Below are positions 10,060-60,445 of a stretch of 64,000 nucleotides of DNA, in pieces (the stretch's first letter is position 1; the number at the start of each line of letters is the position of its first letter). The notes beneath the pieces are model-generated. The model was not told the origin of the DNA and did no database searches. It saw only the letters and a program-made list of their open reading frames with translations. A program made the translations under genes and the position numbers. Source of the DNA: Octopus bimaculoides (taxonomy: Eukaryota); NCBI RefSeq assembly GCF_001194135.2, contig NC_068991.1:43297062-43361061 (forward strand), in the 5' to 3' direction.

Positions 10060-12600
10060 ATATTCTCCCATATTCTTTCACCACTCACCCGCTTTCCTAA
10101 AAGTAGGGGTTATCTTCTAGAAGCAGGTGGTAGTAGCAGCAGCAGCACCAACAGCAGCAGTGTTACCCAATGACATATAGGCTTGTCTGGAATTTTTTAT
10201 TTTCCCCACTCCCATCACTTCTGAAATAAGTAATTTTGGATCACCCTGTATGTTATTCAGTTTGGGGGTGGGTGCAAGATGACATAAATCATTTGATCAT
10301 TTAAGCTGTTGCTGATAATTTCCTAGTTGCTGTTACATTGGTGTGATTTTTTTTTTTAAGAAACCTTAAAAGTTACAGGAGGGTGGGGTATGGGGTTTTT
10401 TTTTTAACATTTAAAGAAATTCATTTGTACTTCATTTTCATTTCATACTTATCCTCAATATTCAAAACTTTGAATTCATTGCAACAGTAGTTTTGTTTAT
10501 AATTTTCCAGTTTAATTTGTACTATTGTTGCATCACCTTTATTACATGGTTAACACCCACTCCCTTAATTTCAATCAAGTAATTTTTATAGCTTTTTAAA
10601 TCTTATTTTGTACAATTTTAAAATTACTGTCCTTAAGCTTATTTTCTAACTTCTCTTGCTCTTCATTCTATCACTATCCATCCATGGCACTTAGCAGATG
10701 GGTTCTTGTTACAAAATGAGATCTGTTTGATCTGAACGATTTTAAAAACAATCCCCTCCCCTTCAAATTCTGCATGTTCCTTTAATAAGTGCCTTTTTTT
10801 CTAAGGGAGCAACGTGGCATAATACCCTCCCCCAACCTATTGCAGTTATTGTAGTGAAGTACTTTTCTCTAAATTGCACATGTTGGATTCTGGAGCTATT
10901 GATTCAATAAGAGTTGCCTGGTTGATTTGAAAATGAAATTTTGGTTGGCTGAAAGAACATATTAGGCAAGTGTTTGAAGTTATGATAGCAAAAACGGCAT
11001 GGATTAGCCCTCCATAACATTAGCTTTTGTCACATTTCAGGGGCCCCGGCTCTGGCTACAAAAGTAAAGCATACTCGATGTCCAGAGGGAGAAAGTATTA
11101 ACATAGATAAATGGCAACGAAGACTGCCTCCACCTACTCCTTCTGCCCAGCATCTGCCCCTGCAATATACAGCATTGGTGATGGGCAAGTGATAGCACTT
11201 ATGGAATCAGCATCATGCAAACAGCGGAGTTAATGAAAAAAAAAAAAAGATACAAAAAAACATAAACACTACTCTGGGTCCACGTAAGCGAAAAAGAAAA
11301 GAGAAACTTAAAACCCTGGAAACATCTGCCAGAACACTAAAACATCTTCCATTCACATGGAGCTGCTATTTTCCTTCATAAGTTTGTATCATAACTTCAA
11401 TTATTTCAGCAAAATCTGAGCATGACACTCACCTGGACTTGCTTCTCGCCCATTGCTCATCTTACCTGTATTACCAGAACTTACCCAATCCCCACTTTTT
11501 TAAAAAAGTTTCACTTTCCTTCATATGAAAAGTTTTAACATTTGTCTTGCTAGATACTGTTTGAATGTTTTAGTGCTTTTTGCTATGTACCTTGCCTGCA
11601 GATGTAGTAGTATTAGTTATTGTTTTTTTTTCTACTCTGGCCATGCTCGTTGCTCCACAATATTAAAAAAAACAAAAAACAAACTTGAAATGAGAAGAAA
11701 AAGCAACCAAACCATTATTTTAAAGTATGTACTATGTGTCCCTCATTACAAGGAACTTTGTATTATCCATAGGTGGTAGTTTCCTGTATGAAACCTTTGG
11801 GTGAAGTCAGGTCATTGTAACTACCATATTACTGTTTTATATTGTCTGAGAGGACGAGGAAGCATGCTGACTGTATGCAGGATGGTTGAATAAAAATGAA
11901 TGATGCCTTTATTGCTTTGTTTTCTTTTCCCCTTTGTGTAGTATTTGTGTTGTACCTGTTCAACTATGCACATTTCTTTGCCAATATCTGGCTATAATGT
12001 TGCATATATTAGTAATGGTTTTAGGGAAAATGGACTTTAAAAAAATCTTAATGAAGCAAGAAATATAAAAGGAAATAGATTTATATATATTGTTCAATCA
12101 ATTTCTTTTTAAAAAATTCATCTTGATGCTTATGTGGAGGTTTATTAGCCAAGGGGTGTTGAAATGTACAGCAGTTTGTCCACACAACCATCATTGTTGT
12201 ATAATTCTGGAAATAGTGATTTGGGGGATTTTCCCGTGGTTGTTTATCTTGAAAGAAATTCAAGAAACTTTTTTTTATTTTTAGTAAAAGTGTTATATTA
12301 AGATTTCTAAGAAAATGAGCTGTTTCATTCTCATCTTAAGCCATTAATTTTTTTTTTTTATCACAGCATTGTGATTCTTAGAAATATAGCAATTAAAAAT
12401 GCTGTTGGTCTAGCTTGCAAGTTATGAATTTCTTCAATGCAATAAATGAATTCTAGTTGGCACTTTTGGTCAGAAGTTTTTAAAAAAAATCCAACAGCTG
12501 TTTATCAAGTTGCTATGTATAAATTTTTCTTGTTGGGGAAAAAAATCCAAAGCTTGCACAAATTAGAAATAAAACTCAGTTACTGAATGCAATGGTTAAA
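10060..12600 (+). other. Probable hnRNPUL1 3' UTR with candidate poly(A) signals (AATAAA at 11889, 12441, 12568)
   Basis: Non-coding U-rich stretch after the stop with no transposons recognised; the end point cannot be determined from sequence. Confidence 0.4.
11041..11101 (+). CDS. HNRNPUL1: Candidate alternative terminal exon of hnRNPUL1 ((W)GPGSGYKSKAYSMSRGRKY*)
   Basis: cttttgtcacatttcag acceptor; phase 2 matches the internal donor TG|gtacgg at 10034/10035; composition continues the G/S/Y tail. Confidence 0.5.
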
Positions 12601-13099: not shown

Positions 13100-16000
13100 G
13101 ATTTGTACCATTAATTACATTTAATCTTTCAATAGTCTTAATATACATCAGATTTCTCTTATATAACTTTGGACTGTATTTGTAAATCTGGATTCCATAG
13201 AGGGGGGGGGGACCTGTTAATTTTGTATCAAGTTTCACCGAGCTCTGCTTAATGTACATTGCTTTTTATTGTGGGGGGGGGACTAAAAGTAGCTACTTTT
13301 TCCCCCCTCCACACATTAATCTTGCCCTTTTAAATAAGGCAGTTCTTTACCAGAATTCTTCAAACATTTAGCCTTTATAGCTATATATTTTTGGGTCACC
13401 AGACCACCACCTCTTGATAGGGTCTGTTGAAGGGTCAGCCTGATAGAATATGCTCTTATCAAGCATGTAAGGACAGTATTTTCTACCTAGGTGGGAGGAA
13501 TTTAAATTGACCCCCAGTACTTGACTGGTACTTTATTTGGTGCTCACGTATATTGCTATTTCTTTTGCAAAAACTAAACTGAAACTGATTAAAATATTTT
13601 TGAAGTTATACAGCTTCTCATGCATTTAATTTTTAATTCATCCAAATCATTGAAATAAATAAACTATTTTGAATCATTTTTCAATTCCATACTTTATTTT
13701 AGCCTAAAGTGTTTGACAGTGAACAGGGTCCATGAAAGCAACTGCTTCTAATAGCTTAGTTTGAATGAATGACTTGAGAAAAATGCTTTCCATTCCAACT
13801 TGGCCAAATTGAATTGAGGAATAAAACACCAGTCCAATGTTGCGGTCTGGTCTGGTGTGGTGACTTGCTTATTAAGAACTGAGGTCTTGTATCAGTTGCA
13901 TTCATACAGATTATTGGAATTTCCTGCAGAGGAGAAAAAAGTGTATCAGTTATTGAAAGTTGCATTATGAATATGGCTTAATGAATTGAGATAGCATTTA
14001 TTACATACTGAAAGCCATTGATTGTAATCTTTAACCCTTTAGTACTCAAATTACTTTGTCCAGTGTAATACTTATTCTGTTTTGAATTAATCATGTGCTG
14101 CCATATAGCTTTAAGATTGTTTGTCGAAGATGTAGCATAAGTGTAAGTTCAGATATGACCAGTTTAAATGCTAAAGGATGTCTATTCAGTTAAAAATTTG
14201 GGTTTTGAAGACTGATGTATATCAAATTTCTTTATTTTTAATGAAATTTATTGACAAATGAATTATTATTGAATGGTTTGACTGTTTTAAAATGAATTTG
14301 TAAACAAGACAAAGGCAACATACCTGCTATTTGGTAAAATGTTTTATCCTGAGTTTTTTTTTTTTTATCAGCCATTTAATATATCTAGTTATGACACATT
14401 TTCCCAGCATATTTACTCATGTACTTAATAAATGTATAAAAAAATTTTAGTGGGAAATTTAAGAAGCTCAGCCTAGAAAAGTTGATTTTGAAATTTAACT
14501 TATTTTACTGAACTTGTTGGAGCTGGTATTATTTCCTCGTATATTTTTTGTGTTTAGACTCAGCTTTTAAGGAAAATGTAGTTGAATGGTGCAGATGTGG
14601 ATCTCTGACAGACAAAGAGGCTTTTTAGGAACCAAATTACTTGCTCATTAGCATGTAAGTGGTTGAGTGTTCTGCATATGTGTACTTCTAATTCCTAAGT
14701 AGAATTAGTGTGGCTGGCTTCTAGACTGTTTCTGTGCCCATCTTTAACAAGTATGGGTTGACTTGAAAAGCAAGCTTTTCTATTTTCACCTTAATTTTCT
14801 CTTCAAAATAACAGCAACTTAATGAATGATACAGGATAATAGCAATATTTTCTGCACTATAGTAACATTTATGCAGCCTAGCTCTGATGTAAATGCTGAG
14901 TTTACAAGGTAGCTTCTAAAGAATATGCTTAAATACTGCCACTAAAGTTACCAGGTTTAGATTTGGAAGCGCGACAACCGAGTTGCACTTCAAGATTTCA
15001 TTGGTTTTTACATTATAAGGTTGCTAATGCTATTGGAAAACACGATGACTGACTGAAGCTGGAAGTAAACAAAATGTCTGATCAGATTTTAGGTATCAAA
15101 TGACAGGTCTTCATTAGGCTTGAAGTTGAATAGTATAATAAAAAGTCAATGAGAAAGCAACTTTAGCCACTTCAGTACCAATGTTAATGTGATACTGAAT
15201 AGTATTTATTTCATGGTAATGTGACATTTTTTGTACAAATTATCAGATGTGTACAATTATGTCTTGTCAAGATTATTCCACATTTTGAAAAAATTTGCAA
15301 AGAGAAATGAAATGGTTTGTCCACAAAAGGCAGGAGCAAAGTTTTCTAGTTAAGCAATTAGAAAATTGCCACCAATCTACTTTTTAATACTGTTAAAATT
15401 TAAAAACCTATCAAGTAAACAATTAAAATTTTTTTAATGTTTTTATTTGTAAATGGTATTTAAAATGTTTTTATTTGTAAATGATTTTTTTTTTTCACAA
15501 ATGTAAAATACTTTTTGTGTTTTTTTTTTTTGTATGGTATTGGATGATAGCACTTCCATTGATTCTCACATGGAAAGATTATAAACAAAGAGGGCAATTA
15601 ATGGAATTGGGAATATCACAAAGCAAGCTTTAGTATGGAGCAACAGAAAACAATAAAAACTAACAAAATTGGGTGTTATTTGTTAAAATAGTTTAAACTC
15701 ACTTTCCTCAAAGAATTGAAATAAAGAAAGGTGTGGTGAAATCACAGACAATTTTGAATAACTATTAAATATTGCACCAATGAGATAAATAGCACTGAGG
15801 ATGAGCTTTGATACTTATATAGAATAGCAAGAAAGAGCAAATGTGTGATGTTTCATGAATGGTAACAATGGATGCACACTTGAGGATCAAGTAACAGTTG
15901 ATAAAACCAACTTGTAATTTATTTTACTATTAATTAACCTTGAGATGACAAATGATTCCATCTCTGGCAGGATTTCAACTGAGAAAATCAAAACAATGTG

Positions 16001-18069: not shown

Positions 18070-19503
18070 TTATACACAACCATATTCATACCACACAGAA
18101 TTGGTTTTGGGGTCCTTTGATTCGTCAGATGACTTGCTGTTGCTGTTAGTGGTTGTAGTTGTAGTGGTGGGGGTAGTGGTAGTGGCATTGCTTAGACTGA
18201 GGTGCTGCTGGGTATTTAGTTGTTTTGTTTGTGGGGAGATTCTTGCCATTGGAGCATTTTTCACATTGCCTCCTGTATAACTTGGTTGTGCACTGGAATT
18301 TCGAGAATATCCAGCCTGTGATTGTAACAATGAAGATGAAGATGATGATGTAGGCAGCATCTGGTGTGTGTCTTGGTGATTAGAATTGTTAGTAACAGTG
18401 TGTGTGTAATTATTGGGGTCTCTGTTTATTGGTTTTGGAGGGGTACCCCGCGAGCGAGACCGATATGGATAAGACTCATCTGCTTCGCAGATCTCCAAAA
18501 TGTTATTTGAAGATGTAGGTTTGTCAACAGACATGCCTAATGAGTGATAGTCATTAAATGTTTGGCTGTTAGATGCTGCATTGTCGTAAGCATACTCAGG
18601 AGATCGTGATGTTCTTTTATTTAAAGACAGTTCACTTTTGGAAAGAGTGGGATCCGTTTTGTAGAGGTTAGGAGAGTCTCTTGGTCTTTTGGGGAAAGGG
18701 GAAGCAGATCCTGTAGGGCGTGAAGATGGCCCTTGATTTGGTTGATTGTTGAAGTGCATAGAAGTAGGCCTTTCAGCTGGCTTCATAAAGTTACTCTGTC
18801 GGTTATCACTCATGGGAGACTGTTCACGAGATAAGTAATGTGGCTCTGGGTATGGCATTGACTGACTGACATGTGCAGGGGCATACATCTGGTCAACAGT
18901 ACCAGGAGTGACTGACCGATTCGATAAATCATGAGATTGTGGTGCTTGTTGAGTAGCAATGTGATTGTAAGATTTTGCAGACCTCAATACAATGTATGGC
19001 TCTTGTGAGACAGAATTCTGAGACTGTAAGTGATCAGCTTGTTGACTGTCTGTCTGATAGCGGTGATTCTGGAAATAATTACTCTCTGGATAGCGTCGTC
19101 TAACTTTAGGAGTAGGAGTTTTTACACCATCTTTATTAGTTACTGGCTGGACATAGGTGGAGTGCAGATCTGTTTTACTATCTCCTGTACTCTCACCATT
19201 GTTAGAAGAACTACGAGACACTTTGGACAGTTCTTGGTGAGAATTATTTATGACTTTTGATGATGGATCTAGGTTATTTGAATATGGTTCTGATAAGTGT
19301 CTGGAAGAGTTGGAATGGTTAAAGGTAGAGTTTTGGTTAGACTGCTCATAAACGTGCCGTTGATAATGGTCTTGCTCAGTTCTCACTGGATATTTTCCAC
19401 CAGGATTCAAATTAGAAGAACCTTCAGATATTTTATTTCTCTTCAGCTGTTCACTTTGGGAAAAACTGACACCTTCGTTCAGTTTCCTTTCTTGACCTTT
19501 GGT
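18070..19503 (-). CDS. CCDC88A/CCDC88C: CCDC88 terminal exon, 477 aa disordered S/N/P/T-rich tail ending VWYEYGCV*
   Basis: ttatttgtag acceptor at 19504-19505, phase 0; frame extends 31 codons upstream of the ORF-track start. Confidence 0.95.
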   Translation of the reverse strand, partial: TKGQERKLNEGVSFSQSEQLKRNKISEGSSNLNPGGKYPVRTEQDHYQRHVYEQSNQNSTFNHSNSSRHLSEPYSNNLDPSSKVINNSHQELSKVSRSSSNNGESTGDSKTDLHSTYVQPVTNKDGVKTPTPKVRRRYPESNYFQNHRYQTDSQQADHLQSQNSVSQEPYIVLRSAKSYNHIATQQAPQSHDLSNRSVTPGTVDQMYAPAHVSQSMPYPEPHYLSREQSPMSDNRQSNFMKPAERPTSMHFNNQPNQGPSSRPTGSASPFPKRPRDSPNLYKTDPTLSKSELSLNKRTSRSPEYAYDNAASNSQTFNDYHSLGMSVDKPTSSNNILEICEADESYPYRSRSRGTPPKPINRDPNNYTHTVTNNSNHQDTHQMLPTSSSSSSLLQSQAGYSRNSSAQPSYTGGNVKNAPMARISPQTKQLNTQQHLSLSNATTTTPTTTTTTTNSNSKSSDESKDPKTNSVWYEYGCV

Positions 19504-22500
19504 CTACAAATAAAATGGCAAAAGTGTTTCAACATTAAATTTAACAGATACAGATAAACACACACACACATTTTAAATGGAAAAGTTTAAAATTATGAAA
19601 AAGATCTTGAATGAGTGAAAAAGTTCAAAGCTGGAAAGAATGGTTTAAGAGGTGGGAAAGGATGTTTAAAAGGAGGTAAAATGTGAAAGACAAAGGTAGG
19701 AGCAGTGAAGCAAAAGCTACATGTATAACAATGAAAAATTAATTTTCTACAACATATAAGAAAGAAACCAAATTTTAAAGATAAATATTTTCAATAAATG
19801 AAAACTCTTCTTAAAGAATGAGTCACTTGATTTCATCACCCAGGAGTTTGTGTATCCAAACCAAGTTTGTTTTTACAAAAAGTTTTCTCTAATAATTGCT
19901 TTATGTCAGTTTCTCTGTGTATAGTACTTAATATGTGTAAGCAAGGTTATTAAAAAGAAATTATTTAGATGAAATGCAATGCTTTAAAATAATTATAAAT
20001 TCATCGCATTTAGTTTTCCTCAACAGAACTGGTATTTTTCCCATAGTAAAAGTTAACAAAAAAGTGCAGATAAAGCAGTCAGAGTGTAGAAGAAAATTGC
20101 CATGTCGAAATTTTGTAAATATACCAAAAGGTTCACTTAGAAGTAGGATTAAACTAGCCATCTTGTTTATGAAGATGGAAAGATTAGTTTAAAATATTTT
20201 AGGTTATGTGCTGATCCTCATTAGAACACTTTAAGGAAGTGAGAATGTTAGGTAGGTAGATGTGAGGCAAGGTGAGATATATTTCAGAAATAACTTACTC
20301 TCAATGTAGGAGAATCAGGATTTGATTCTTTAAGAAATTGTTCTAGTGTGAGAAGTTCGCTGCCTGGAGATTGTCTACCATGAATTGTTGAAGGGGATCG
20401 ATGATAGTCATCATCTACATCAGCCATTTTGCCTTTTGAAAGGAAAGAATGGAGTTAAGCTTAAGAAGTGATACATTTTTATATTTTAAATTTCGTGAAG
20501 CAAACGCTTCTTTAAGATGTCTTCTATAAAAAAGCAGCCAGCTGGAAAACATTTTACTGCTTCAAAGTCCTTTTGCCATTTGGTAGATAGATATAAAGAT
20601 TAAACTACTTCAACAGTAGTTACAAAACCAAAAAATAAAAAAAAGAAAACTCATTAAAAAAAAGTCAAAACAAAAGAAAAATTCTAACATTTCAGTGGAT
20701 GAAAACTATTAAAAAAATAAAATATAAATTTCTTATATCTATTCATGTTTTACATTAAAAAATAAAAAATAAATAAAACTGAAAGTCATAAATGTTTTAA
20801 TGAGAAGAATGTTATAATTATGATTAGCATTATTCAATCATTTATAATAATAGAAATATTTTATTTGATAGCCTGGTGCTACATAACTAATTTTCAGTTT
20901 TACTTTTCTGTTATCTTTTACATGGTCAGCAGCCATACAGGGGCACTGCCTTGAAAGGCTTAGTTGAACACAGTACTTATTATGTTTTTTTAATGTCTGG
21001 TACTTATTTTTGGTGTCTTCTGTTGAACCACTAAGTAACAAGGACTTCTGTAAACCAACACTAGTTGTCATGTAATGAGAAGTACAAACAAGTGTGTGTG
21101 TGTGTATATAAATATACATACATACACACACACACACATGATGGACTTCTACACAGTTTCTGTCAACCAAATTCACTCACAAGCCATTGGATGACGTGGG
21201 GCTTTACCAGAAGACAGTTGCTTAAGGTGCAGCAGAGTGGGACTGAACCTGAAACCATGTGGTTGCAAAGCAAGCTTCTTATTCACACAGCCACGACTGT
21301 GTATAGTTTGAGAATTTGTTTTCTGTCTAAATTACAATTCCACATTAAAGTATGTAACTTATATCACAAATTCATTCGATTCGGACTCAAAAGAGCAAGA
21401 TTAATATTTGTTTCAGAAAAATCCCTGTCTAGTGTCTTTAAAAACATTCTAAATAAGAGCTATTTAATTCCAAACTGTTCTTCAAAAAATATAAACTGCT
21501 TCATGCACCCATTTCATATGTATTAAATAATGTAGCAGATGATACGTGTACCTATTTAGTAATGTATCAAATAAGAGATTTGTTATAAATACAGAATCAC
21601 ATCTTCACCTACATGATATCGTTACTTAAATTTCTGTGAAGTTATTTTGTCATTCAGATAAGTAATTAAATTACTATGGTGTAATATTGGTCTTTTGTCT
21701 CTATCATCTACCATCATCACCCAGGGTTGTGTCATCTCAGTAATGTTGAATACAAAGGAGAGAATATAGAAGCCAAACCTGTAGGTTTATTTCTTGAACT
21801 CCAGAATTCTGTAATGAACTTTTATTTAATATTGCATGAGCTTCAAATTCATTGTTATATCTAAAAGTTTTAAAGCTTAGGTCTGGTTAGAGTATGGAAG
21901 AACTTTTTCAACTTCATAGTTCATATACAATAAAGCTTAAAGCTGTGGACAGTATTTGAATCAGGAAACCAATCATGCTCTTGTTTTGTTTTGACTGCAA
22001 TGTTATACTAAATCAACCATTTAGTCTCACAGAAACTAAAGAAAAATCTCTCTCTCTCTCACACACACACACAAAAGCAAAAACATTATTATTACAGTGC
22101 ATAACTTGCCAGAGGTATTATGCAATGCTTATGATGAGAGAAAGTAGGCAGTAGAGAATAATTGGGTATTACTGTAAGATAATCTTACTGTGAGCCTAAG
22201 ATATGAGTGGAGGAAGGTCCCATGTGGAAGTGACATGGGGTAGGATAGTACAGAGTCAGAAAAGCAAAGAAACAAGTAAGGAAAGAGGAGGACAGGAACT
22301 TACCAAGAAGCTAAGCTAGGTGTCAGGGACATGTAGCAAGAGAGAAAGCTGAAAGTAAGTGGTTTGCTACAGTTCTATGACATGGAAACCAGAAATGAGG
22401 TGTATTGGATTTCAAGAAAATCTGGGTAATCAGGATGTCAACAGCAATAGGTGTGAATGATAGTGGCACACCTACCTTCACATGTTAAGAAGAATGTAGC

Positions 22501-29900: not shown

Positions 29901-32900
29901 AAAAATATAATAAAATAAAAAGAGAACCAAAGAGAAGAGCTAAATTCTAGGTAATATAGCTGAGTCCTACCTCCTAGAGAGTATGTGCCATCTCTACTAG
30001 CAGAATCAAAGTTCACAAGGTCTTCACTAGATCTGGAACCTGAGAACACAAAATATAAAAAAATTTAAATTACTGAAAACTTTTTGGCAGGCAGTCTCCA
30101 AAGCAGAAATTATACCAGTTGAAGAAACTAAGGTTGCAAATACAATTACAGAACATATTCACATGCACATACAGTGAGAGAGATATGCTAAACTGGTAGA
30201 GTAGAAGGATAAGATTAATTGATAATTTATCATGCATTTACAGTATATTAATCTCATTATGTTAACATCAAGTAAACCATGACAGTTCTAAAAATAAACA
30301 TCTCAATAAATATAAACAAACAAAACCAAAACAGAAAACAAAAAAGTTAACGTTTAATTTTTTATGTAGCAAGACAGTAAAAAAAACCTGTTCTGAGGCC
30401 ACAAATAGTTTTAAAGTTTTATGAAGAATTTTGTAATTTCATTATAGTCAGCAGCATATTTTAAAAGTGAAACATAATTCATGAAGAAGTTATATAACTA
30501 TTAATTAGGTGTGGTTGGTTACCAAATAATTTTAGGAGATGAAGTTGTAAATTGTTAGCAATGAGAACTTAAATTATTGTCAAGAAACCAAAACATCCTG
30601 GAGTAAATTAAATTTATTTTATCAAAATAAACTATACAAAATACATGAAGGTTTCAGAAATGTAAAACCCACAGATTTTATCATATTTTGATAATATGTG
30701 TTTTAATATATCTCCTCAAATTAAAATGTTGATCGTGTTGTGTATATATATAAATGTAAAATAACTTTGTTACTTAAAAGCTTCTTAATAAATGGTAGTA
30801 AAATATATAGTTTACTATAACAGGAAAAACTGAGAATGTTACCTCTAACATTGTTGGAGTCCAGTTTGTAAAACAACAGAGTTGTTGACATCATAAAGCT
30901 TTTGTTTTGCTTGACAAATGAAACCTCATGAGCTTTTTCATTTGTTTTCTGTACTTTGGCTGGAGGGAAGAGTACTTCAGAATAAACATACTAGGATGTT
31001 TATTATATCTAACACTAAATGTGCAACTAAAGATTAATGCAACAGAAAGAGGAAAACAATGCTACATTTGAAATTTTGTGGATGAAAGGAAATTAAGTAA
31101 ATATCAGAAGAAAAAAAAATGTCATAATCATTCAACTGATCCAAATATAACTGAAAAGTAATATTTAATGACATGCACTGTAATACTAACAACAGATGCT
31201 ACATCTACTTTACTGTTAAGCAGCCAGTGATAAGAAAGGCAACCACAGTGTAAAGATAGTTGCTTGAACAATATACAAATATCCACATTTATACTACCTC
31301 ACTAATGCTATCACAAAAGCAATGGATACACACTAGTACCTCGGTTTTCGAACATTTCTGATCATGAATAAATCATGCTTCATCTCCTGTGTATCTCATA
31401 TTCATTTAATACAGTAGTACCTCGGTTTACAATCACCTCTGATCACAAATAAATTATGCTTTATATGTAACTATATATANNNNNNNNNNTGTATTACATA
31501 CAAATGTTATGCAATGTTATAAAATAAATTTAAAGCCAATTCACTTCAGACATTTTCATTTCAACACAAATTAGTAGACAAGGAAGAAATGCTTTTCTGC
31601 CCATCAAAATTCTCTGAAGCTAAGCCAGGCACGTAGCCATGGGGAGGGGGGAACTATGGGGTGCTCAGCACCCCCAGTTAGAATCTCAGACCACCCCCTC
31701 CAGTATGAGAATTTGCTTTATCCACTTTTGAAATAATACATTGTTGTCGCCTTCTTTTTTCTCATAAGCAATATCTGAAGTTGCTAAAGATGCAATAAAT
31801 TGAATTTTGATTTAGTAGTTAGTGATATGAAAATGTGGGTAAATTAGAGCTTGTTTGTATTAGTGTTTGTTGTAGCTGTAATTGTTGTTGCAGAATTGGC
31901 TGCTGATCTGGTCATCAACTGTGGGTTGAATTAAGAAGTGGCTGACACTGGGTCAATTGTTGTTGTTATTGTTGAAAGTATGTGAAGAATTGTTGCTGTA
32001 AGAAATTTATGGTAGTAAACGCATCACTACACATGTTTATATAAGAACAGAGATGGGCATCAAAAAGCCATTTTATTTCTACTAGTCAGAGGGGATTATT
32101 ATTTGTGAAAAAGGAAAGAAATTTTTGAAATTTCCCAAAATATACATTCAGAAAGGATTTTTCAGGTGAGAACTTTCACTGAATAATTTTTCTTATTCTT
32201 TGAACAAAGTTTATACTGAAATCATTTTGTGTTAAACTAAAAAAGCATAGAAATATTAATAATTCTAAATCTCTCTTAAGGAGACTACGGCAGCAGTACT
32301 GGATATTAATAGTTATTAATAAAATAACAATTAATAAAAAAGCATAACTTTGATGAAATTGAAAAAAAAAATTGCTTGAACTGAAATCTCTTACGAGTTT
32401 AATTTAAAAGTACATAAATTTTAAGAAATTGTTACTCTTACTACGATATTCTACCTTAGAATTAATTATTGCGAATATTAGTGCCCAAAAGTAATGAATC
32501 ACTACCGAAAAAAAGAGAACTGAAGCAATCATTGCTGAATTTCCAATTTGATTCATCTAATAATGCTAAACAGAAGAGGATTGCAAACGAAGTTTCACAG
32601 CTCAAGGGAGGTCTTGCAAAGTCTTTGACACCCTCATTGGATGATCTAGGACAGGTCGACAGTGCAGCCAGTTCTAGCAAAGTTTGATCCAAAAATTTAT
32701 GGAAATCAGAGATGTGACTTCTTGTCAAGCTGGTATACTGGTTGTCCATGGTTAGAGTATTCTCTTTCAAAGAAAGCCTTATTTTGTCTTGCTTGTCGGC
32801 ACTTTAATACTTCTGCTCAAGCTGATAATTGTTTTATTACAAATGGATATTCTAATTGGCCTCATGCAAAAGAAAAAAAACAAAGGTTTAAATAAACATG

Positions 32901-46024: not shown

Positions 46025-49000
46025 ACACGCACGCGCGTTTGTTTGTGTGACACAACACTGCTAGCTAAATCATGACTGGTGTTGCGTCAAAATGATAACT
46101 CAATCAGTAGAATATAAAAAAATAGCAGACTGAAATAAGTAATATAGGTGATGCCCCAAAAGTGTAGCAGTCCAATGACTGAAACCAGGAAACATGGATG
46201 TACATATATGAAGATAAAATGAAGTCAATGGATCTCTAGTGGTTGTAATGATGAATATTTTAGTTGAACCACTTGGTCGAGTATACTACAGACACTTGTA
46301 CACTGAGGTAAACCCTCAGGCAGAATCAACATAACACAGAGTATCAACAATGCTGACCCTTTGGATCATATGTACAGTCTATCCAGCAATAAAAATTTTT
46401 GAAGTTAAATTAATATAAAACCACAGCCTTTTTTATCTTTAATCACATAATAAATTGAAGATACATAAAAGCATAAATTATGAAAATATAATTAAATATT
46501 CAAATATATTTCAGCATTTGAGTAATTTCAGTTACATTTAGATTAGGAAAAATATTGTAACATAAGAAATTTAACAAAACTGTAAATATGAGTGTGTTTA
46601 ATTAGGTGACTGTTTACTGTTACTAGTTTCTTCACTTCATCTTTCTTTGGCTACATTACTTTAAAAATTTGTTGTAGAGCAAGTCTAATTTTATACGACA
46701 TATTTCTATCCTATCACAATTAATAGTAGATTACACATGCAAACAGGTCCTTATAAAAAGAATGTGTCTGAAATATATAGAAAGGCAAGTGGAGAAGTGA
46801 TGCATAGCAAGCAAGTGTAGCTGACAAGTAAAGAAGCAATGCAAACACTATTTTCAACCTAAAACAAATGATAATGCAACAATTAATGCATGCAATAATA
46901 TGAATTTAACAATTAGAAAATATATAATAAAAACAACAAATTTAAATTTCAGCAAAATTCTTTTCTACTCTAAGCACAAGGCCCAAAATTTTGGGGGAGG
47001 GAACTAGTCGAATAGATTGACCCCAGTACGCAACTGGTACTTAATTTATTGACCCCCAAAAGGATGAAAGGCAAAGTCAACCTTGGCGGAATTTGAACTC
47101 GGGACGTAAAGACGGATGAAATACTGCTAAGCATTTCACCCGGCATGCTAATGTTTCTGCCAGCTCACCACCTTAAATTTCAACAAAATTACAAGAAAAT
47201 GGTAAGAGTGGACATAGAAACAAATGATCTATAAAGTAGCAATGGCCAACCTTTATCTAACAACAATTTACACAAAATGTATTTTTAGCTTTGTCTCTGA
47301 CTTAGCATTAATAACTAAGTAACATTGACAAATTAATATAAGATATAAATGTTACAGGAGTTCCACTCCATATTAAAGGGCTCTTAGGGTCAGATGATGA
47401 TGGTCCTGAGGTTGAAGGGGCTAAAGTTGTTCATTCTTTTAATGGTTTTAAAGTAACATTTCTATATTCTTAGAGTAACTTTACGAAACCTACAGAATTA
47501 TTTCTTTAAGAGCATAATATAGCAAGATATTGAAACAGTTGAAAATAGAAAATAAATACGCTTTACTCTTTTACTTGTTTCAGTCATTTGACTGTGGCCA
47601 TGCTGGAGCACCGCCTTTAGTCGAGCAAATCAACCCCAGGACTTATTCTTTGTAAGCCTAATACTTATTCTATCGGTCTCTTTTGCCGAACTGCTAAGTT
47701 ACGGGGACGTAAACACACCAGCATCGGTTGTCAAGCGATGTTGGGGGGACAAACACAGACATACAAACATACACACACACACACACACACATATATATAC
47801 GACGGGCTTCTTTCAGTTTCTGTCTACCAGATCCACTCACAAGGCTTTGGTTGGCCTGAGGCTATAGTAGAATACACTTGCCCAAGGTGCCACGCAGTGG
47901 GACCAAACCCGGAACCATGTGGCTGGTAAGCAAGCTACTTACCACACAGCCACTCCTACGCCTAAATCTATCAAAATATTTCATTTCTTAAAAGAATTTT
48001 TGCTTTGGTTATTGTAAAATATTGATTAGCCAGTAATGTTTTCAAACAATATCAGTTCTGAAATAAATAATTAAAAATTTTTTAAATACTTAAATTTTAA
48101 AACAAGAACATAGAACAACTAAAATAAAATGAAAGAATTTAGATAAATCTATAATTTTTAGCAAAATTTCCAAGATCATTTTTTAAATTCACAAATTATC
48201 TGAGTGTTCAATTATTATTTTTCTTTTCATACTCAAGTGATTGAGCAACTCAGGTGACTCCACTAATTTATTAGAAATATCCAGGATTTTAAGTAACAAC
48301 TTTTGACTAGCATATTAGCTATCTAATTTCCTTGGCACTAAAATTTTGGAAAGTGATATTTTTTACTGAATTAAATCTAATATAATTACTATCCCTTATT
48401 TTACCAATAGTAGTTTATGTAGATTTGAACATAGATACATAAGGCATAGAATTAGACATTGAAGTATTTATTAACTCTTTGCCTTCTGTACAAAGTTCAC
48501 ATTTGCCGTGAGATTGGTTGGATGTGTTCAGTATCAAAATGATGTAAATTGACAAGAGGTTTGTGGAAAAAAAAAAATGTAAAAAGATAAAAATGCTTTC
48601 TCAGTTAAGACAAATAATGTCACTTACTAATTCTTCGCCCACTATTACTATCAGCATCAGCTGCTTCTCCACAGGATCCTGAACCAACAGATGAGTTATC
48701 AGGACTTTCAGAATTGGTTAAATTTGTCTTGCTTTTTGTTCGATGGACCTAAGTAAAGAACAATTGAAATATTTAAGATGATTAAAGATAAATAAAATTT
48801 AAAATAAAACATAAGTAAACTTAACTTCCCACCAAACTTTAAAATTTACTTTAATGAAGTGATTTCTTCATATTAAGAATTTCAGTAATATATATCTCAT
48901 TTATTGATCTCTTGGAAACTCAGTGCACTCAATGCATCTAAAATTACATCAAAACAAGTTTTCTCTTGAGTTACAAAATATCCTACAAAATGTCCCTACT

Positions 49001-50144
49001 GCTTAAGCTAATGTCTCAGAGATAAAATGCTATCTAGTAATCAAACCCACATTTAAAATCTGACCAAGGACACTTTTACTAACACTAATCTCCAGATTTA
49101 TACATTATTCTATCTCTATATCAACACAACAGAAACACTTGTTTTTTCTTTTCTCACATGTATTGTATTACAGGTTTTCTTATGATTCTATATTAAGTAG
49201 AATTCTTTCATTAGGACTTCATAACTGCATCTTTCAGAAATAGGTATCTGAGTATGAATTTAATAGTTTAGAAATACACACAATTGAAATACAATATTAA
49301 CAAGCATTTATCCCTGTCCCCCAGAAGAAGGTAAAAAGATTTTTGATATTGAACTTCAGCATCAAATTTCTTTTTACTCACTGTGTCTGAGGAAGAGGCA
49401 GTTCTGCTGGCTTTTGCAGGCCTTTCTAGACCAGTGAGATAGATTCCATTGATGTTTGATATTAATGATTCCACTTTTTACCATAATTCTTCACTTTTCT
49501 CAAAAAAGTTAATTTAATAGTAAAACTTTGAGATTAATGATTACACTACTCTTCAAAATCTTTTATTCCCTTTGAGGTACAAAATGCTACTTACCCGTGT
49601 TATAATACCTCTTGCTTTCCGTACTAGAGTGGCTCCAAGGCTGCGTCTTCAATGAAAGATATAAGCAATAAGATACTAACAAAATTAATTTACTATTGAA
49701 CACACACACAAACACGCAAATATCAATATTTTATCCATTCAAGAAACAATTTACTGAGAAATTAAATGATACAAAAAACAATGTTATTTATCTTAACATT
49801 TGCATTTGCGTTTCCTTTTGTCTATAAAACACTAAATGATAATATTTAACAAGTTACCTCCACTGGCACCACCACCAATATTAATCATGTAGAGAGAAAT
49901 TGTACATTAACCTGTAATTATCATTAATACTACAAATTCCTGAAAATATCAAAATGGTTCCTAACCAGTAGCACTATATCATCACCATCATTTAACATGT
50001 CTTCCATGCTGGCATGGGTTGGACAGTTTGACAGGAGCTGGCCAAGTATAAGACTATACCAGACTACTGTCTGTTTTGGCATGGTTTTTTATGGCTGGAT
50101 GCCCTTCCTAACACCAACCACCCTGTAGAGTGGACTGAGTGCTT

Positions 50145-53200: not shown

Positions 53201-55348
53201 GAAACACTTGCTAATGAAACCCTACAAGCTGCAGTTTGTTCAGGCCATAACAGCTGATGACAACCAAAAACGCAAACAATTTTGTGTTGATATGCAAGAG
53301 AAACTTGAAGAAGCTGAGTTCAATGAGGCCACATTTCATTCGAATGGCAAAATCAATAAGCATAATGTTCGCATTTGGGGCAAAGAAAATCCCCATACTA
53401 CAGTTGAGCATGAGAGGGACTCACCAAAAGTGAATGTGTTCTGTGCTATCTCCAAGAAGCGTGTTCATGGCCCAATTTTCTTTGAGGGAAATGTGACTGT
53501 GCAAATGCTTAAGAACTAACTAACAGATGAACTCATTGCAAATGAAAATGAAGACTTTGTTTTTCAACAGGACAGGGCTCCATCTCACTGGAACCTCACT
53601 GTGCAGGCTTATCTCAATGACAATCTGCGAGGAAGATGGATCAGGTGTACAGGTGATGAAGACAACGTGCTGTTGAAATGGCTGCCACATTCACCTGACC
53701 TGACACCTTGCGATTTTTTTCTCTGGGGCTATGTGAAGGGCTTAGTCTATGTTCCCCCTCTTCCTACAAACCTAGAGGAATTGATCAGAGAAATACTGCC
53801 ACACTGGAGACTGTTACCCAAGACATGCTGCAGTGTGTTTGGGTGGAGCTGGACTACCGACTTGACATGTGCTGTGTCTCAGGCGGTGCACATATTGAAC
53901 ATTTGTGAAATCTTTCATGGGATCCACATACTTTTGAATTTCTCATTCAAATTTGGAAGAATAAATCTTATGTTGCTCAACATTAAACCTGTTTAGTTTC
54001 ATTCACTTTGACTATGTAGTTTCTGTGAAAGTTACATCTCAAATGAGATCAAATTTTTTGAATGTAAAGAAGTATATATANNNNNNNNNNNNNNNNNNNN
54101 NNNNNNNNNNNNNNNNNNNNNNNNNNNNNNNNNNNNNNNNNNNNNNNNNNNNNNNNNNNNNNNNNNNNNNNNNNNNNNNNNNNNNNNNNNNNNNNNNNNN
54201 NNNNATATATATATACATACATAAGGCGCAGAAGTGACTGTGGTAAGTAGCTTGCTTACCAAAGTTATTTCATGCTACTGCTATACATTTATCAGCCACA
54301 ATTTGCTCTCAGAAAGGTAAATAGTAGTTTGTAAGTATGTGGACTAAAGTAGTATGTTGATGGTAACAATTACAAGTATTGTATGTACTGTGCCATTGTG
54401 TGGCACCTTGGACAAGTGTCTTCTACTATAGCCTCAGGCTGACCAAAGCCTTGTGAGTGGATTTGGTAGATGGAAACTGAAAGAAGTCCATTGTATATAT
54501 ATATATATGTGGATATGTTTGTGTGTCTGTGATTATTCCCCAACCATCGCTTGACAACCAATGTTGGTGTGTTTACGTCCCTCATAACTTAATGGTTTGG
54601 CAAAAGTGACCAACAGAATAAGTACTAGGCTTACAAAGATTAAGTCCTGGGGTCGATTTGTTCGACTAAAGGCGGTGCTCCAGCATGGCTGCAATCAAAT
54701 GACCAAATTGAATATAAGAATAAAATGTTAAAAGGTTTACTTTTTGGGAGATTCTAGGCGCATCTTATAATGTTCCATTATTTTCTCTTCTAGTCTCTCT
54801 TTCTGCCGGCGCAATTCAGCAAATTTCTCTCTGTAATTAGAAACATTAATTAGCAAGTATTACTAGGATTAGAAAGAGTGGTGATGTTGTGTGAGCTAAA
54901 CTAGATATCTAATAATATTAAAGTTTACTGCTTTACTGTTATGAGTACAAATTCTTCCAGAGTCAGTATTACTTTTAATCTACTGGATCTAATAAAATAT
55001 TATACAGTTTTCATTACTTTTAATTAAAATTTCTTGGATTAACACTTCAAGTGTGCTAACATCCATTTTAATATTATATAATAGCTTATTTGATAAAGAG
55101 TTCATTTTACTTCTCGTTCACATGAAATTTGGAAAATAAGTACTAGTAAAACATTGAATGCTATGATTACTTTTGGATTCTAGAAATTAAATCTTAAGAG
55201 ACTAATTTTTCTTAGGGCAACGGAAGTAGCAAAGAGAGTAAAGAGCTAAATGAATGCTTTATTACAACTACATCAGTGCCCCATGTTAAAAACTTGCAAA
55301 ATTTGACCTTTGGCCTTTTAAATCTTCAGTTTATGTGTTCATCATCAT

Positions 55349-55383
<35 letters not shown>

Positions 55384-58300
55384 CGCCCTCCCCCACCAAA
55401 AAACCCCCCAACATATACATACTATTATGGTCTGTGCTAAAGCACAGACCATTGCATGGAACAGATACTGCATTTCACCTTCATCTTAAGTCACTCAGTT
55501 ACACACCCTTTCCTTCATCCTCCTACTGTCTATACAAAACACCATCTGATCTCATTATATAGCTGTAGATTTTTGAAATTTTTAAAGCTGTATTAAATCT
55601 GTTGCCTTTATTTTTTATTGTAATAGTTAATTGCATTGCTGGTTACATGCTTCCAATGCACCAATTACTGGTTAAGTGCTACCCAAACTGGGGTACTCTC
55701 CCTAGAATGTTGGCACTCTAAATTTACTTGCAACTGTCAACTTACAACTGTTTAAAAATAGACAATAACCCCATTTCTCACCAGTCTAGAATGAGTTGTA
55801 CTTTGTCAATGACATATAAGAGAAAACAGCCCATGTCATGGGCACAGCCCCTGTTATAGGCACAGCCCCTGTTATAGGCACAGCTCTTTCCTCCAGACCC
55901 AGACAATAAAACACAAAACAGAATTTCTGATGGGCTTTTGCTCAGTTTATGACTACCAAATTTCATTCACAAGAAACTGGTTGACCTGAAGTTATGGTAG
56001 AAGATCTGTCAGAATACCATGCAGTGAAGCCAACCTTGAACTACAGGGGTGCCAAGTGAAATTAACCAAACAACCATGCCTGTACTTATTTTCCAGTTAA
56101 GAAATATTTTAGTCCCAGGTGTAATTGTTAACTAACAACCTTCCTAACTCCACTCTTCATTACAGAGATTACAGAGTGCAGCTTCCATCTCCAGCTCCCT
56201 ACATTGGATTCATCATCTAACCAGCTGACTTGTTCACTGTATGTATCAGCCCTTGATCCATATCCATTCAAATTATTTCTTATCTGTATTGTTTTTATAT
56301 AATTAAGCTTCAAACCCGATATTTCATGTTACTGCTATAGACTTATCAGCCACTATTTCCTCTCAGAAAGGTAAATAGTGGTTTGTAAGTATGTGGACTA
56401 AAGTAGTATGTTGATGGCAACAATTACATGTATTGTATGTACTGTGCCTCAAGGAAACTTCTAAGCCTCTATTTGCAGAGCATAATGGAGTAAGTTAAAA
56501 AAAATAGAGAACAACTTAGAACTGGATTATTGAGTGAAATAAATAATGATGTGTAGTTAGGTGATTTGAAATGCACAAGTACAAAAATAGATACTTACTG
56601 ATAAGCTTTTGCAGTCTCTGCATGCTGGTCTTTACTGTTGAGAGCTTCACTGAGAAGCTCTTGATTTTGGTTTATCAAAGTCTTCATCTGATACAGCAAT
56701 TGGTTATTTTCTTCTTCCATCTTTTGATTCATTTGATCAATTGCCTGAACAAAAATAGTTTAAAAAATGTTAATATCTGGTTAGATTATCACTTAGCATT
56801 CAGAAAAGTCATAGCACACTACACAGTTCAAAGGTGTTTGAAAAAGAAAATTGTTCATGTTAAACATTGTTCTGCTATTTTCATAAACATTTGAAGTAAC
56901 TATTCCACAGCTTTGTGTTCTTCAAAATGCTTATCATTCAGCAGTGGAATAGTGGTGGTGGTGGTGGTGGTTTATTTTTCTTTTAGATTTGATAGAAAGT
57001 AGCAGTGAGCAATGTTTAGCCAAGGTAATCTAATCCTTTTGATACCAAACCATCTAATATATATGATACAAATTTTCTGTTTTAGAGACTCTGAATTAAA
57101 ATCTTCCATCATAACTTCATGTTGATCTATGTTTCAAACACTAACTAAATAATGGTAAATATATTTTACTAAATTCTTCATGATTTTCAAAATTAACTGA
57201 AACAAAGGCAGTTTATTTCAGTAGAAATATGGTAACAAAAGGGCAAAAGAACCACATCAATCCTCAAGTCAGAGATTTCAAGAAAAGAAAAAAAAAAGAA
57301 AAAAAGAAAAACATCCCATGGTGTACAAAATAAATACATTGGACCTTTTATTTTAATTCCAGCATTTGAGCCAATATGGAATGGAAAACTCAGTTGATAA
57401 CCCAGTTTTTAGTGCTGGTATTCTAATAGAACAACTCAGCAGTTTCCGTCAAATTGGTTGTTAATAGGAAAGACATCCAGCTGTAAAAATTCTAGCCATA
57501 AATCATGATAAAGTACGTAGGATTGAGGAAAGAATACAGTCTTTAAGACAGACAATCCATGTTAGCATAAAAAAATAATGTACAAGGGAATACTGATAAG
57601 GAAACAATTTGACTTTTGTTGATTAAAACTAAGAATATTCAGGAAGATGACTTTTATAAACTTGCATTTCTTGTTGAAACAGTTGTTAGGGTATAAAATT
57701 TGCTTTCAAATATTGATGTAAAAAAAAAAAAATAAAGGTAGGAGAAAAAAAAGCTGCTTCAGACCCATATATTTTTTTTGCAATGAAATCACTTGAAATA
57801 GCTGGATCAACATTCTTTTATATACTGTGTATATTCTTTAGATATACTTTTCTTTTACATTTATATAATATGTATATATACTTTTATACATTTGTTTTCA
57901 ATTCATCTATGTTGATATATATAATGACCATATAACAGTATAATGGTACTGCTATCAACTGTAGACTGCATAATGTTGGTTTATTCTTAACATAATTTAC
58001 AGTTAGAATAGTTTTATATCTAATAGTTTAAAAGTGTAATAAATGGGAGTGATATTTTCCGATGGTACTGAGTAGATAAATTAGGAGTAGCAGGGGAAAG
58101 AGAAAGGCAAATAATTCAGTTCAAGGATGAATTCAGCTAAGCAGAGGAATGTAGTGGTGATGGCAGTGCTACTGCAAGGTTAGGAGATGTTGTAGCCCTC
58201 ACAAAGTGCTTCAAACAGTTATGTCTGGAAGTGGTTAACCTATTGATCACAAGAATTATAGTTAGAAGAAAAGACAGCAAGTAATAGCATAGTTAATGGC

Positions 58301-60445
58301 CATGGAATTGAATTGATTATAAAGTTGCAAACTCGATTTGAAGAACAGGAAGGAAATTGGGAAAAGTTTATGCAAACTATAATATAAACTGCTTCAAATA
58401 TGAAACAAATGTAGCTTTTACTTACTTCACAACGAGTGGCTAGTTTTGTCATCTCAAGATCGGTATTGCTGAGCTGCTCCCTGCTTTCTGCAGCATCTCC
58501 TTGAAGTTCAGTGTAACGGAGTTGCAAATCATTATATTCAGTTTTTATTCTCTTGTACTCCACTCCAAGATCTTGATGCTCCTTTTCCAAACGCTCATAT
58601 GCTGTGTGCAAATTATCATATTTGTTCCTCATATGATTATAATCCATTTGCAGGTTACTCAGTGACTTGGACTCTACTTTCAACTGTTCCCTCTCTTTCT
58701 CAAGCATTTCTCGCAGCTTAGTGATATCATTCTTGCCTCGAAGTAAAATAGATAGTTGATCTTGTAGGTCTTTCATTTCACCACAACTTGACTTATGTGT
58801 GGTTTTCAGAGACCCATGCTCAGAAATAAGGGACTCATATTCAGTGGTAAGATCATCATGGAGCTTTTGCAAAGTTTCATGTGCAGAAACTAAAGAGTCA
58901 TATTTGTTTTGTAGTTCTTCAATACGCTGCAAATTTCTCTCATTCTCTAGATCTGCATTGTTCAACTGAGATTGCAATGTGGAGTTCTGTGCTTGCAGTG
59001 ATGTGCATTGCGTCTGTAAGGTTTTGTTCTCTACTTCAATCTTTGCATGCTGTGAATGGCTGGTGTTATTTTGTTCATGAAGTGTACTTAACTGATATTG
59101 AAGCTTGTGGTAATCATTATCCTTTTTAGCTATTTGTTGATCTATTATTTCTAGTTGGCGCTTAAGGTTTTTATTTTCAGCCAGCAATGTAGCATTCTGC
59201 AACAAAATAGTATGAGAAAGGTCTTTAAAAAAATGATATAATTTCATGGAAGATATCTTTTTCTTAATCAGTTAAGTTTGAACTGAATACAAAATTAAAT
59301 GTTCATAGTGTTTTGGAGAGAATACTAATTTCAAGAATGCAGTAAAAGATTAAGAAACTTAAAGGTATTTAAGTTTACATTTTAAATTCACAAATATTTT
59401 ATACAACAATGGTATAGAAACATGTTTACAAAGCAGATAGATACAATAGCATATTCTTTCACACAACTTCACTAACAATTATGAAGTAAAATTTATTAAC
59501 ACACTACACATATATGCATTTATGTATGCATATGTGTTGTGTTGTGTGTGTGTGTATTACTACTATATATATTTTAGAAGCCATAGCTTAGTGGTGCAAC
59601 TATTGTACTTCATTTAATGGGATTGTGGGTTCAAATCCAGCTATATGCACTTTTCTCTATGAAAATAAGGAAGCATAAAAATAGTGGAATATTATTATCA
59701 ATAGTTTCTGTGTGATTTCTGACCACAGTTACGATGGCTTACTTTTTAACAAAAATAAAAATAGTAGAAAACAACTCTCAGAAATACAGTACTATCTATG
59801 TGAACTTAAAGTATCAAAAACTTCACAAAAAATATAATTTCAAAAGAAGTTCTCTATTTTATGGTTCTCTATGAAATTCCAACTGCCTTATAGTTATCAA
59901 AAGGATCTTGGAAATTATTTTTGATCATATTTAAACATCTATATTAAATTGAAATAAAAAAAGTCTTTAGATGAAATTATTTTTACATGAAAGAAATGAA
60001 AAAGATATAGATTGTTATTTAAGTACTTACATCTCTTTCAACCTCAACCACTCTGTCTTTTATTTCCAAAATCTGTCTTGTAGGATTACTGATATTTACA
60101 ACAGATGATGTGTTCCTTCAAAAATAAAACCATTCATTTTTTAAATACATATCTGGACATATATGCATGTATACATTCATATACTCACACATAGCACACA
60201 CACACTCATTTATATACATATATTCGTATATGCAAATTATATTTGTGTATAATATGTGTGACTGTACATTCATGTGTATGTATCTTGAAAAGTTCCACCT
60301 AAATTTTATTGAAAATTTATTATTACTCTCAGTTTAACAGCTTAAAATCTCATGCGTGAAATATAGCTAACAACATAAATACACAAATTTTTATATAAAA
60401 GTATGAGAGAGAAAGGAAATTAAAGAGACAGTCTTAGGTTGATAC

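Follow-up and report, generated by a model that had tools for sequence, protein, structure and literature searches.

The closest described relatives of the gene analysed here are human GIV/Girdin (CCDC88A) and Daple (CCDC88C), in which a Galpha-binding-and-activating (GBA) motif contacts Galpha-i3. Residues L1682, F1685 and L1686 of GIV are needed for this binding (PMC7515630, PMC4484057), Daple engages W211 and F215 of Galpha-i3 through F1675 (PMC4484057), and two GIV serines have opposite effects, S1674, which is followed by a proline, being activating and S1689 inhibitory (PMC8376251). Canonical GIV has no PDZ-binding motif (PBM), whereas the long CCDC88A isoform, GIV-L/Girdin-L, unites GBA motif and PBM in one protein, the PBM being supplied by alternative 3′ processing (Ear et al. 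2021, PMC8042451). Drosophila Girdin and Caenorhabditis elegans GRDN-1 are members of this family too; they end in the same ...EYGCV PBM (PMC8042451) but lack the GBA motif. We describe here the homologous gene of Octopus bimaculoides, whose 3′ half lies on the minus strand of a 64,000-nucleotide stretch of contig NC_068991.1 (positions 43,297,062 to 43,361,061, hereafter the window) and encodes both a GBA motif and a PBM.

Several papers have presented the CCDC88 GBA motif as exclusively vertebrate. The invertebrate orthologue is said to be one that "lacks the GBA motif" and the motif to be "an evolutionary innovation of vertebrates" (PMC6504902), and the CCDC88 GBA/GEM module is likewise called an "evolutionary innovation of vertebrates" by Marivin 2019 (JCB). 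These statements underpin the argument that vertebrates swapped morphogenetic G-protein-coupled receptors for a cytoplasmic activator. In its account of a survey of 201 CCDC88 orthologues, made with the same pattern that we use below, Coleman et al. (2015) report positives in 5 of 43 invertebrate species and a loss of the motif in most invertebrates (PMC4760084). The only validated invertebrate GBA protein, C. elegans GBAS-1, has the same core pattern and presumed Galpha-binding mode as the octopus protein, but it is nematode-only and unrelated beyond the motif (Coleman et al. 2015), i.e., a case of independent origin and no orthologue. For the octopus locus, our joint best explanation, to which we give a probability of about 0.7, is a single CCDC88 gene with a homologous GBA motif and a PBM tail, both of which would have been present in the bilaterian ancestor.

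GBA motif and PDZ-binding tail of the octopus gene

Eleven exons in the window (Table 1) join into one uninterrupted frame of 1033 codons followed by a stop, with GT-AG borders at every CCDC88 junction found. These exons were located by tblastn and a splice-site search guided by the full-length girdin-like protein of Argonauta hians (GAB1601376.1), of which they cover approximately residues 920 to 1890. From its sequence, we identify the octopus gene as a single CCDC88 (Girdin/Daple) orthologue of the type that existed before the vertebrate duplication. The window does not reach the first approximately 920 codons, which include the HOOK domain; in the Argonauta protein, the Pfam domain HOOK_N occupies residues 12-153 (E = 5.5e-21), and it is also present in the scallop orthologue. 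About 450 residues of coiled coil are encoded in the window and end in ELRRQKERLEEKIMEHYK, which contains the family-type ...L[RK][RK]QKE[KR]LEEKIM... segment.

The penultimate coding exon encodes the 17-residue segment SPGSELLTLEQFLKESN. When this exon and its flanks were compared with the sequences in the PDB, the top match was the Girdin peptide of entry 6MHF, co-crystallised with Galpha-i3 (chain C, SPGSEVVTLQQFLEESN), which is identical to the octopus segment at 13 of 17 positions. The best ungapped BLOSUM62 score of a 17-mer from the window-encoded protein against this human GIV peptide is 70, while 20,000 shuffles of the same protein gave a mean of 19.6 (standard deviation 3.6) and a maximum of 46. 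Moreover, LTLEQFL is the sole match among the 1033 window-encoded residues to the published strict pattern of GBA motifs, [LIMV][TS][LIMV]x[DEQ]F[LIMV] (PMC4760084), which appears in 0.3% of the shuffles. In the alignment to 6MHF chain C, where S at position 4, F at position 15 and S at position 19 are the equivalents of S1674, F1685 and S1689, the Leu-Phe-Leu contact triad (L1682, F1685 and L1686) is identical in octopus, and the serines of SP (S1674) and ES (S1689) are both kept. GIV has VV where octopus has LL, and its Q1683 and E1687 correspond to E and K in the octopus protein. As in GIV, where it spans approximately residues 1674-1690, the motif is situated in a disordered region C-terminal to the coiled coil. 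We judge the octopus motif to be a homologue of the one in the Girdin and Daple proteins of vertebrates.

The terminal exon closes with AAT TCT GTG TGG TAT GAA TAT GGT TGT GTA TAA, i.e., NSVWYEYGCV and a stop, and a free C-terminal VWYEYGCV directly precedes the stop codon (GTG...GTA TAA at 18096-18070). The protein encoded by this exon is 82% identical to that of the homologue P0002 and 45% identical to that of the homologue P0003, and its last 12 residues, KTNSVWYEYGCV, are the same in all three. The VWYEYGCV end is also identical in vertebrate Daple-type representatives. Daple and the octopus protein agree in both modules and in their order, with 12-13 of 17 GBA residues and the complete C-terminal octapeptide in common, although the intervening tail sequences cannot be aligned. 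A search of the PDB sequences with the PBM tail returned chance TPR matches only, the library containing no peptides shorter than 20 residues.

A previous sequence-only reading of this DNA had proposed that a GIV-like GBA motif, with the equivalents of S1674, F1685 and S1689, and a tail of the Daple/Girdin-L type are encoded by one gene. Both modules could be read in the 1033-codon frame, the GBA core at precisely the positions that it had stated, the GIV peptide and the alignment that it had quoted agree with the 6MHF match, and the type of the tail was correctly recognised. It had also described the GBA exon as missed by the list of open reading frames (ORFs); the exon does fall below the default ORF cut-off (47 codons), but it is not unannotated, being part of two public models, the Argonauta protein and a fragment from octopus itself (UniProt A0A0L8FJ54_OCTBM). 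The latter is 100% identical to our spliced C-terminus.

By analogy with vertebrate Girdin and Daple, the octopus motif would form a short helix whose Leu-Phe-Leu triad docks in the cleft between switch II and alpha3 of GDP-bound Galpha-i/o, and this docking would accelerate nucleotide exchange and cause the release of Gbeta-gamma with no receptor involved. Phosphorylation at the S1674 position could exert a positive control and phosphorylation at the S1689 position a negative one. The tail, for its part, would recruit the protein to Dishevelled and to junctional PDZ proteins and could set the site at which the activity is delivered; an alternative 3′ exon, described below, may remove it. The octopus Galpha genes lie outside the window, and metazoan Galpha-i/o proteins are assumed here to be highly conserved, docking residues such as W211 and F215 included. 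We give about two chances in three to binding and activation of Galpha-i/o by the octopus motif.

The motif could be homologous and conserved without being a Galpha-i exchange factor in octopus, if it served another partner or bound Galpha in an anchor- or GDI-like manner. Such a role would fit the literature, which treats invertebrate CCDC88 proteins as devoid of the function, as well as the case of zebrafish GIV, whose recognisable motif reportedly confers only weak G-protein binding (PMC8042451), and the lysine found in octopus where GIV has Glu1687; in addition, conservation of the peptide indicates constraint without telling which partner imposes it. On the other hand, the three residues required for Galpha-i3 binding are kept and the whole published pattern is present, the residue at the E1687 position differs freely from one functional motif to another, in vertebrates and invertebrates alike, and GBA motifs act across distant species, GBAS-1 being able to activate mammalian Galpha. 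We consider a role other than nucleotide exchange unlikely, though the most probable of the three alternatives discussed here.

Distribution of the two modules and origin of their pairing

We performed an exhaustive phmmer search of 1.84 billion representative sequences, using as query a composite of window exons (the coiled-coil end, the pair of exons that precedes the tail, and the last part of the tail), which gave 196 matches at E<=0.001. The best 150 of these 196 matches were scanned for the motif with the published pattern and a small hidden Markov model (HMM), and names were looked up for 30 of them. The named matches that bear a functional name are annotated as girdin, Daple or CCDC88A/B, several others being unnamed or hypothetical and some described merely as HOOK N-terminal domain-containing. 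The LRRQKE[KR]LEEKI anchor at the end of the octopus coiled coil was found again in most full-length matches.

The motif occurs together with a WYEYGCV tail in the "Daple-like" protein of Mytilus edulis (EMLTLEQFLSES), in Ylistrum balloti (DMLTLEEFLGE), in the CCDC88A protein of Branchiostoma lanceolatum (SPGSEMVSLEQFLDESN, with 13 of 17 residues identical to each of octopus, GIV and Daple) and in the girdin of Ciona intestinalis (KISLKQFLKE). It is also present in Mya arenaria (QEMTLAEFLAE) and in Argonauta, with other C-terminal ends in the listed isoforms. Wherever a motif-bearing protein has a recognisable anchor, 130-330 residues separate LRRQKE.LEEKI from the motif that follows it; the distance from the motif to the C-terminus is 216-513 residues in all motif-bearing proteins.

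A tail without a motif detectable by the pattern or HMM scan was found in arthropods (crayfish, spider, mite, wasp, stick insect, butterfly and flies), in nematodes (Caenorhabditis, Trichinella and Panagrolaimus) and, as far as annotated isoforms are concerned, in sea urchin (4/4 isoforms) and crinoid (7/7 isoforms), while the same scan detected neither the motif nor the canonical tail in trematodes. WYEYGCV is the end of the fly-type and nematode representatives. The proteins of Drosophila (Girdin) and C. elegans (GRDN-1), of approximately 1250-1460 residues, are also much shorter than the Argonauta orthologue (1891 residues). The statement in the sequence-only reading that fly and nematode orthologues are described as lacking a GBA motif is borne out both by the literature and by our own scan of representatives.

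A profile built from the GBA exon and tail of seven invertebrates retrieved eight short exon-ORF fragments from genomic contigs, without taxonomic gain: five bivalve-like GLGRP...SPSNEMLTLEQFLMES exons, two ...VSPGSEMLTLKQFLKEAE exons and one fragment ending in the PBM. Two Logan contigs (P0173 and P0175) contain exon-sized ORFs with ...VSPGSEMLTLKQFLKEAEKEAIKSP..., identical to the octopus core at 13 of 17 positions, and may lengthen the list of motif-bearing phyla.

The position of the motif relative to the exons could be compared in three further genes. In the scallop gene, the motif is encoded in the penultimate exon, directly before a large terminal exon, with the intron phases 1 and 0 seen in octopus, the same Gly codon split G/GC at the acceptor and an acidic DDD run upstream. 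In the annelid Owenia, the penultimate exon ends in ...SPGSEVIDLLTFLNETDREPDER and is followed by the terminal exon; at this exon end, SPGSEVIDLLTFLNE retains SPGSE and the Leu..Phe-Leu positions but falls outside the strict pattern (Thr to Asp and Gln to Thr), which looks like the erosion of an inherited motif. This shared structure indicates that the GBA exon is orthologous within Lophotrochozoa, i.e., between molluscs and annelid. In a fish Daple-type gene, by contrast, the motif lies inside the terminal exon and is followed by no intron. Because this single vertebrate gene is organised differently, gene structure adds no support for homology with the vertebrate motif, nor does it refute it.

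The data support a pre-vertebrate and probably bilaterian origin of the pairing of GBA motif and PBM, with later losses, since both occur in bivalves, amphioxus and Ciona and since the penultimate exon is orthologous in scallop and annelid. The proposal of the sequence-only reading that the coupling is ancestral to bilaterians and predates the Girdin/Daple split finds support in the same data. Alternatively, molluscs and, separately, cephalochordates and tunicates could each have gained a GBA-like motif in a disordered CCDC88 tail, in which case its coupling with the PBM would not be ancestral. The functional core comprises only about seven residues and has also arisen in GBAS-1, NUCB1/2, PLCdelta4b and synthetic peptides (PMC4760084 for GBAS-1). 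Several of our results weigh on the same side, against a single ancient origin: the motif is absent from most of the surveyed invertebrates; the bivalve (including Mya) and Ciona motifs resemble the vertebrate ones in the core alone (6-10 of 17 residues); and the lophotrochozoan intron after the motif is missing from the fish gene. The depth of the phmmer sample is that of Bilateria, no cnidarian or sponge having been identified in it. Against such convergence, identity reaches beyond the binding core, with octopus, amphioxus, GIV and Daple all having SPGSE upstream and ESN downstream (12-13 of 17 residues), the motif keeps the same collinear position, after the coiled-coil anchor and before the PBM, the remnant at the orthologous exon end in Owenia speaks for decay rather than gain, and the strict pattern is expected by chance at approximately 0.3% per 1000 residues. 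We regard convergence as improbable, somewhat more so than the lack of exchange activity considered above.

In the preferred reading, that of a homologous motif inherited together with the tail, the pairing of GBA motif and PBM would have been lost or eroded in Ecdysozoa, in echinoderms and partly in annelids, and would not be a vertebrate invention. As octopus, bivalve, amphioxus and Ciona genes hold both modules, these coexisted before vertebrates, and fly and worm, the models behind the contrary view, would represent a derived state; the four sets of genes contradict the statements that restrict the motif "exclusively" to vertebrates. We lean slightly towards the wider proposal that receptor-independent Gi/o activation by CCDC88, combined with PDZ-dependent localisation, is an ancestral bilaterian device, one still at work in molluscs and invertebrate chordates but lost from Ecdysozoa and echinoderms. 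The model of a "vertebrate innovation" and that of a "sequential evolution of PBM then GEM" would in that case be sampling artefacts due to flies and worms, and cephalopods and bivalves could serve as systems for asking what role the pathway had before the Girdin/Daple duplication.

The novelty claimed in the sequence-only reading stands in part. What is new is the pre-vertebrate pairing of the two modules with its evidence from flank identity, selection and exon orthology, while rare invertebrate occurrences had already been counted by Coleman et al. (2015), which limits the significance of the finding, as do the facts that all the sequences are public and that the function is one that we infer. 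A full-text literature search returned no paper tying the GBA motif to amphioxus, Ciona, a mollusc or oyster, although the five species of Coleman et al. (2015) may include a mollusc.

Three vertebrate sequences encountered in the survey deserve mention. CCDC88B is the family member described as lacking a GBA motif. The Myotis lucifugus CCDC88B/Gipie protein (UniRef G1Q6U0) ends, in its public model, in ...WMITLEEFLEERDRAPPS (residues 1479-1495), which fits the strict pattern. A vertebrate Daple-type protein (P0015) contains two GBA-pattern motifs 27 residues apart, SPGSEMVTLEEFLEESN at residue 1638 and DDSELLTLDQFLLESE at residue 1665; we know of no description of such a tandem second motif. 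Finally, a girdin-like protein of Petromyzon marinus (isoform X2) has SPGNKRRSLHEFLLEQ at the expected place (approximately residue 1723), with SPG and an S-L-x-E-F-L core but an Arg at the first hydrophobic position, which puts it narrowly outside the pattern; this isoform has no WYEYGCV end.

Splicing and constraint of the GBA exon and predicted alternative 3′ end

The GBA exon is preceded by a pyrimidine-rich acceptor (...ttcctttcaaaag, with AG at 20434-20433) and followed by a GTAAGT donor (20298-20293), and it joins the terminal exon (acceptor ...tttatttgtag) in phase 0. Skipping of the GBA exon would cause a frameshift and a stop 17 codons further on. Its length is 2 modulo 3 throughout, with 134 nucleotides in octopus, 128 in a more distant cephalopod and 125 in scallop. 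Since skipping destroys the frame of the PBM, the conserved C-terminal end implies that inclusion of the GBA exon is needed, and the exon appears to be constitutive.

The peptide is also conserved among cephalopods. The GBA exon is identical in a second Octopus contig, which has 88% nucleotide identity to the window, introns included, and the 17-residue core of Argonauta is identical to that of octopus. The more distant cephalopod keeps the exon with the same type of acceptor, the same phase and the GTAAGT donor. Of its 17 core codons, nine differ from octopus by synonymous changes only and two by a replacement (K to R and N to S); over 27 codons, there are 12 synonymous and five replacement differences, at 30% nucleotide divergence, and the protein encoded by its terminal exon is just 45% identical to that of octopus. 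The prevalence of synonymous changes over replacements in this comparison indicates purifying selection on the GBA peptide within cephalopods.

That the exon is a prediction artefact or a rare cassette, the main octopus CCDC88 protein being devoid of the motif, is highly improbable: the sole octopus model with the exon is indeed a fragment, whose first exon is doubtful and whose end is not the PBM, and the case for inclusion of the exon is made by two annotations, by conservation and by the frame argument, but the splice sites are of consensus type, the Argonauta model includes the exon independently, substitutions across cephalopods follow a coding pattern, and the 2 modulo 3 length is kept in octopus, the distant cephalopod and scallop, and skipping would truncate the protein and lose the strictly conserved PBM.

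The public octopus fragment model makes use of an alternative 3′ exon. Its donor, TG/GTATGA, lies inside the terminal exon and within a Trp codon, the last exon base being 18092, approximately 4.2 kb upstream of position 13923, and the product ends in ...SVWKFQ, without PBM, according to this annotation only. The Argonauta model ends in the same manner (SVWRYQ), and Mya isoforms diverge at the same Trp. These ends suggest that an isoform without PBM is conserved, which recalls the pair of Girdin and Girdin-L, the octopus and Argonauta isoforms being predicted ones. The mechanisms would differ, Girdin-L being made by intron retention, whereas the octopus variant would use a donor within the terminal exon and a downstream exon.

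Gene model and neighbouring sequences

The features of the gene are collected in Table 1. Identity between the window exons and the Argonauta protein ranges from 74 to 97%, except for the divergent terminal exon (49%). The exon that immediately precedes the GBA exon has a resembling counterpart in Owenia, AAKSSEDLTFDS....

Table 1. Features of the CCDC88 gene and transposon remnants of its introns, in window coordinates.
Feature	Coordinates	Strand	Basis or remark
Most upstream window exon, (S)RFQIFENMMQDAIKKNTEIKEDKILSLESR	63671..63760	-	tblastn with Argonauta protein and splice search; 5′ boundary placed by eye
Coiled-coil exon, LEESKNRNMKLQEELRSVKRDCESLKQRLEEEFQD(G)	61299..61406	-	Argonauta guide and splice search
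Coiled-coil exon, (G)NTSSVVNISNPTRQILEIKDRVVEVERD	60031..60115	-	Argonauta guide and splice search
Large coiled-coil exon, 257 codons	58426..59196	-	90% identity to Argonauta protein
Coiled-coil exon, AIDQMNQKMEEENNQLLYQMKTLINQNQELLSEALNSKDQHAETAKAY(Q)	56599..56744	-	Argonauta guide and splice search
Exon with conserved end of CCDC88 coiled coil (anchor), EKFAELRRQKERLEEKIMEHYKMRLESPK	54741..54830	-	Argonauta guide and splice search
Exon with basic stretch, RSLGATLVRKARGIITR	49595..49646	-	Argonauta guide; equivalents in scallop and Owenia
Exon, HRTKSKTNLTNSESPDNSSVGSGSCGEAADADSNSGRRIS	48628..48748	-	tblastn with Argonauta protein and splice search
Exon, (G)SRSSEDLVNFDSASRDGTYSLG(G)	29971..30039	-	Last base is first base of Gly codon completed by GBA exon
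Penultimate coding exon (GBA exon), (G)KMADVDDDYHRSPSTIHGRQSPGSELLTLEQFLKESNPDSPTLR	20299..20432	-	134 nucleotides; intron phases 1 and 0
GBA motif core	20320..20370	-	Translation, 6MHF match, pattern and shuffles
Terminal coding exon, Ser/Asn/Thr-rich low-complexity C-terminal region ending in PBM	18070..19503	-	Stop TAA at 18072-18070
Extended PBM VWYEYGCV, carboxy terminus	18073..18096	-	Read directly
Start of alternative 3′ exon (G AAA TTC CAA TAA)	13911..13923	-	Annotation of octopus fragment model; strong acceptor, ttttttctcctctgcag
Transposon remnants in introns	32400-34750, 40200-41800, 51800-52250, 53200-54000	+	ORF/Pfam scan
Transposon remnant in intron	44950-45330		ORF/Pfam scan

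In the coiled-coil region, the exon encoding NTSSVVNISNPTRQ... is preceded by two in-phase AG acceptors 27 nucleotides apart, at 60115 and 60088, whose alternative use may lengthen or shorten the protein by nine residues. With the 257-residue coiled-coil exon as query, a word-indexed homologue search gave zero matches, octopus itself included. The first exon of the octopus fragment model, MMSTTLLFYKLDSNNVR (approximately 30840-30894, minus strand), was rejected as a true exon of the main transcript because 48628 is followed directly by 30039 both in the Argonauta model and in the reading frame. It may have arisen as an artefact of annotation, or else it may be an alternative start within the gene, from which a short protein with GBA motif and tail only would be made.

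The long introns of the gene contain transposon remnants and N-run assembly gaps, the latter near 34.2, 44.1, 51.0, 54.1 and 60.4-61.0 kb. One intronic ORF (34317-34745) encodes a hAT C-terminal dimerisation domain (PF05699), and weak endonuclease and reverse-transcriptase matches were obtained at 40221-40526 and 51821-52231, other intronic ORFs having no Pfam match. Downstream of the CCDC88 gene, on the opposite strand, an ORF at 9750-10060 without convincing Pfam match ends in a low-complexity tail rich in Gly, Tyr, Ser, Asn and Gln, and could belong to a neighbouring gene, as its last exon.

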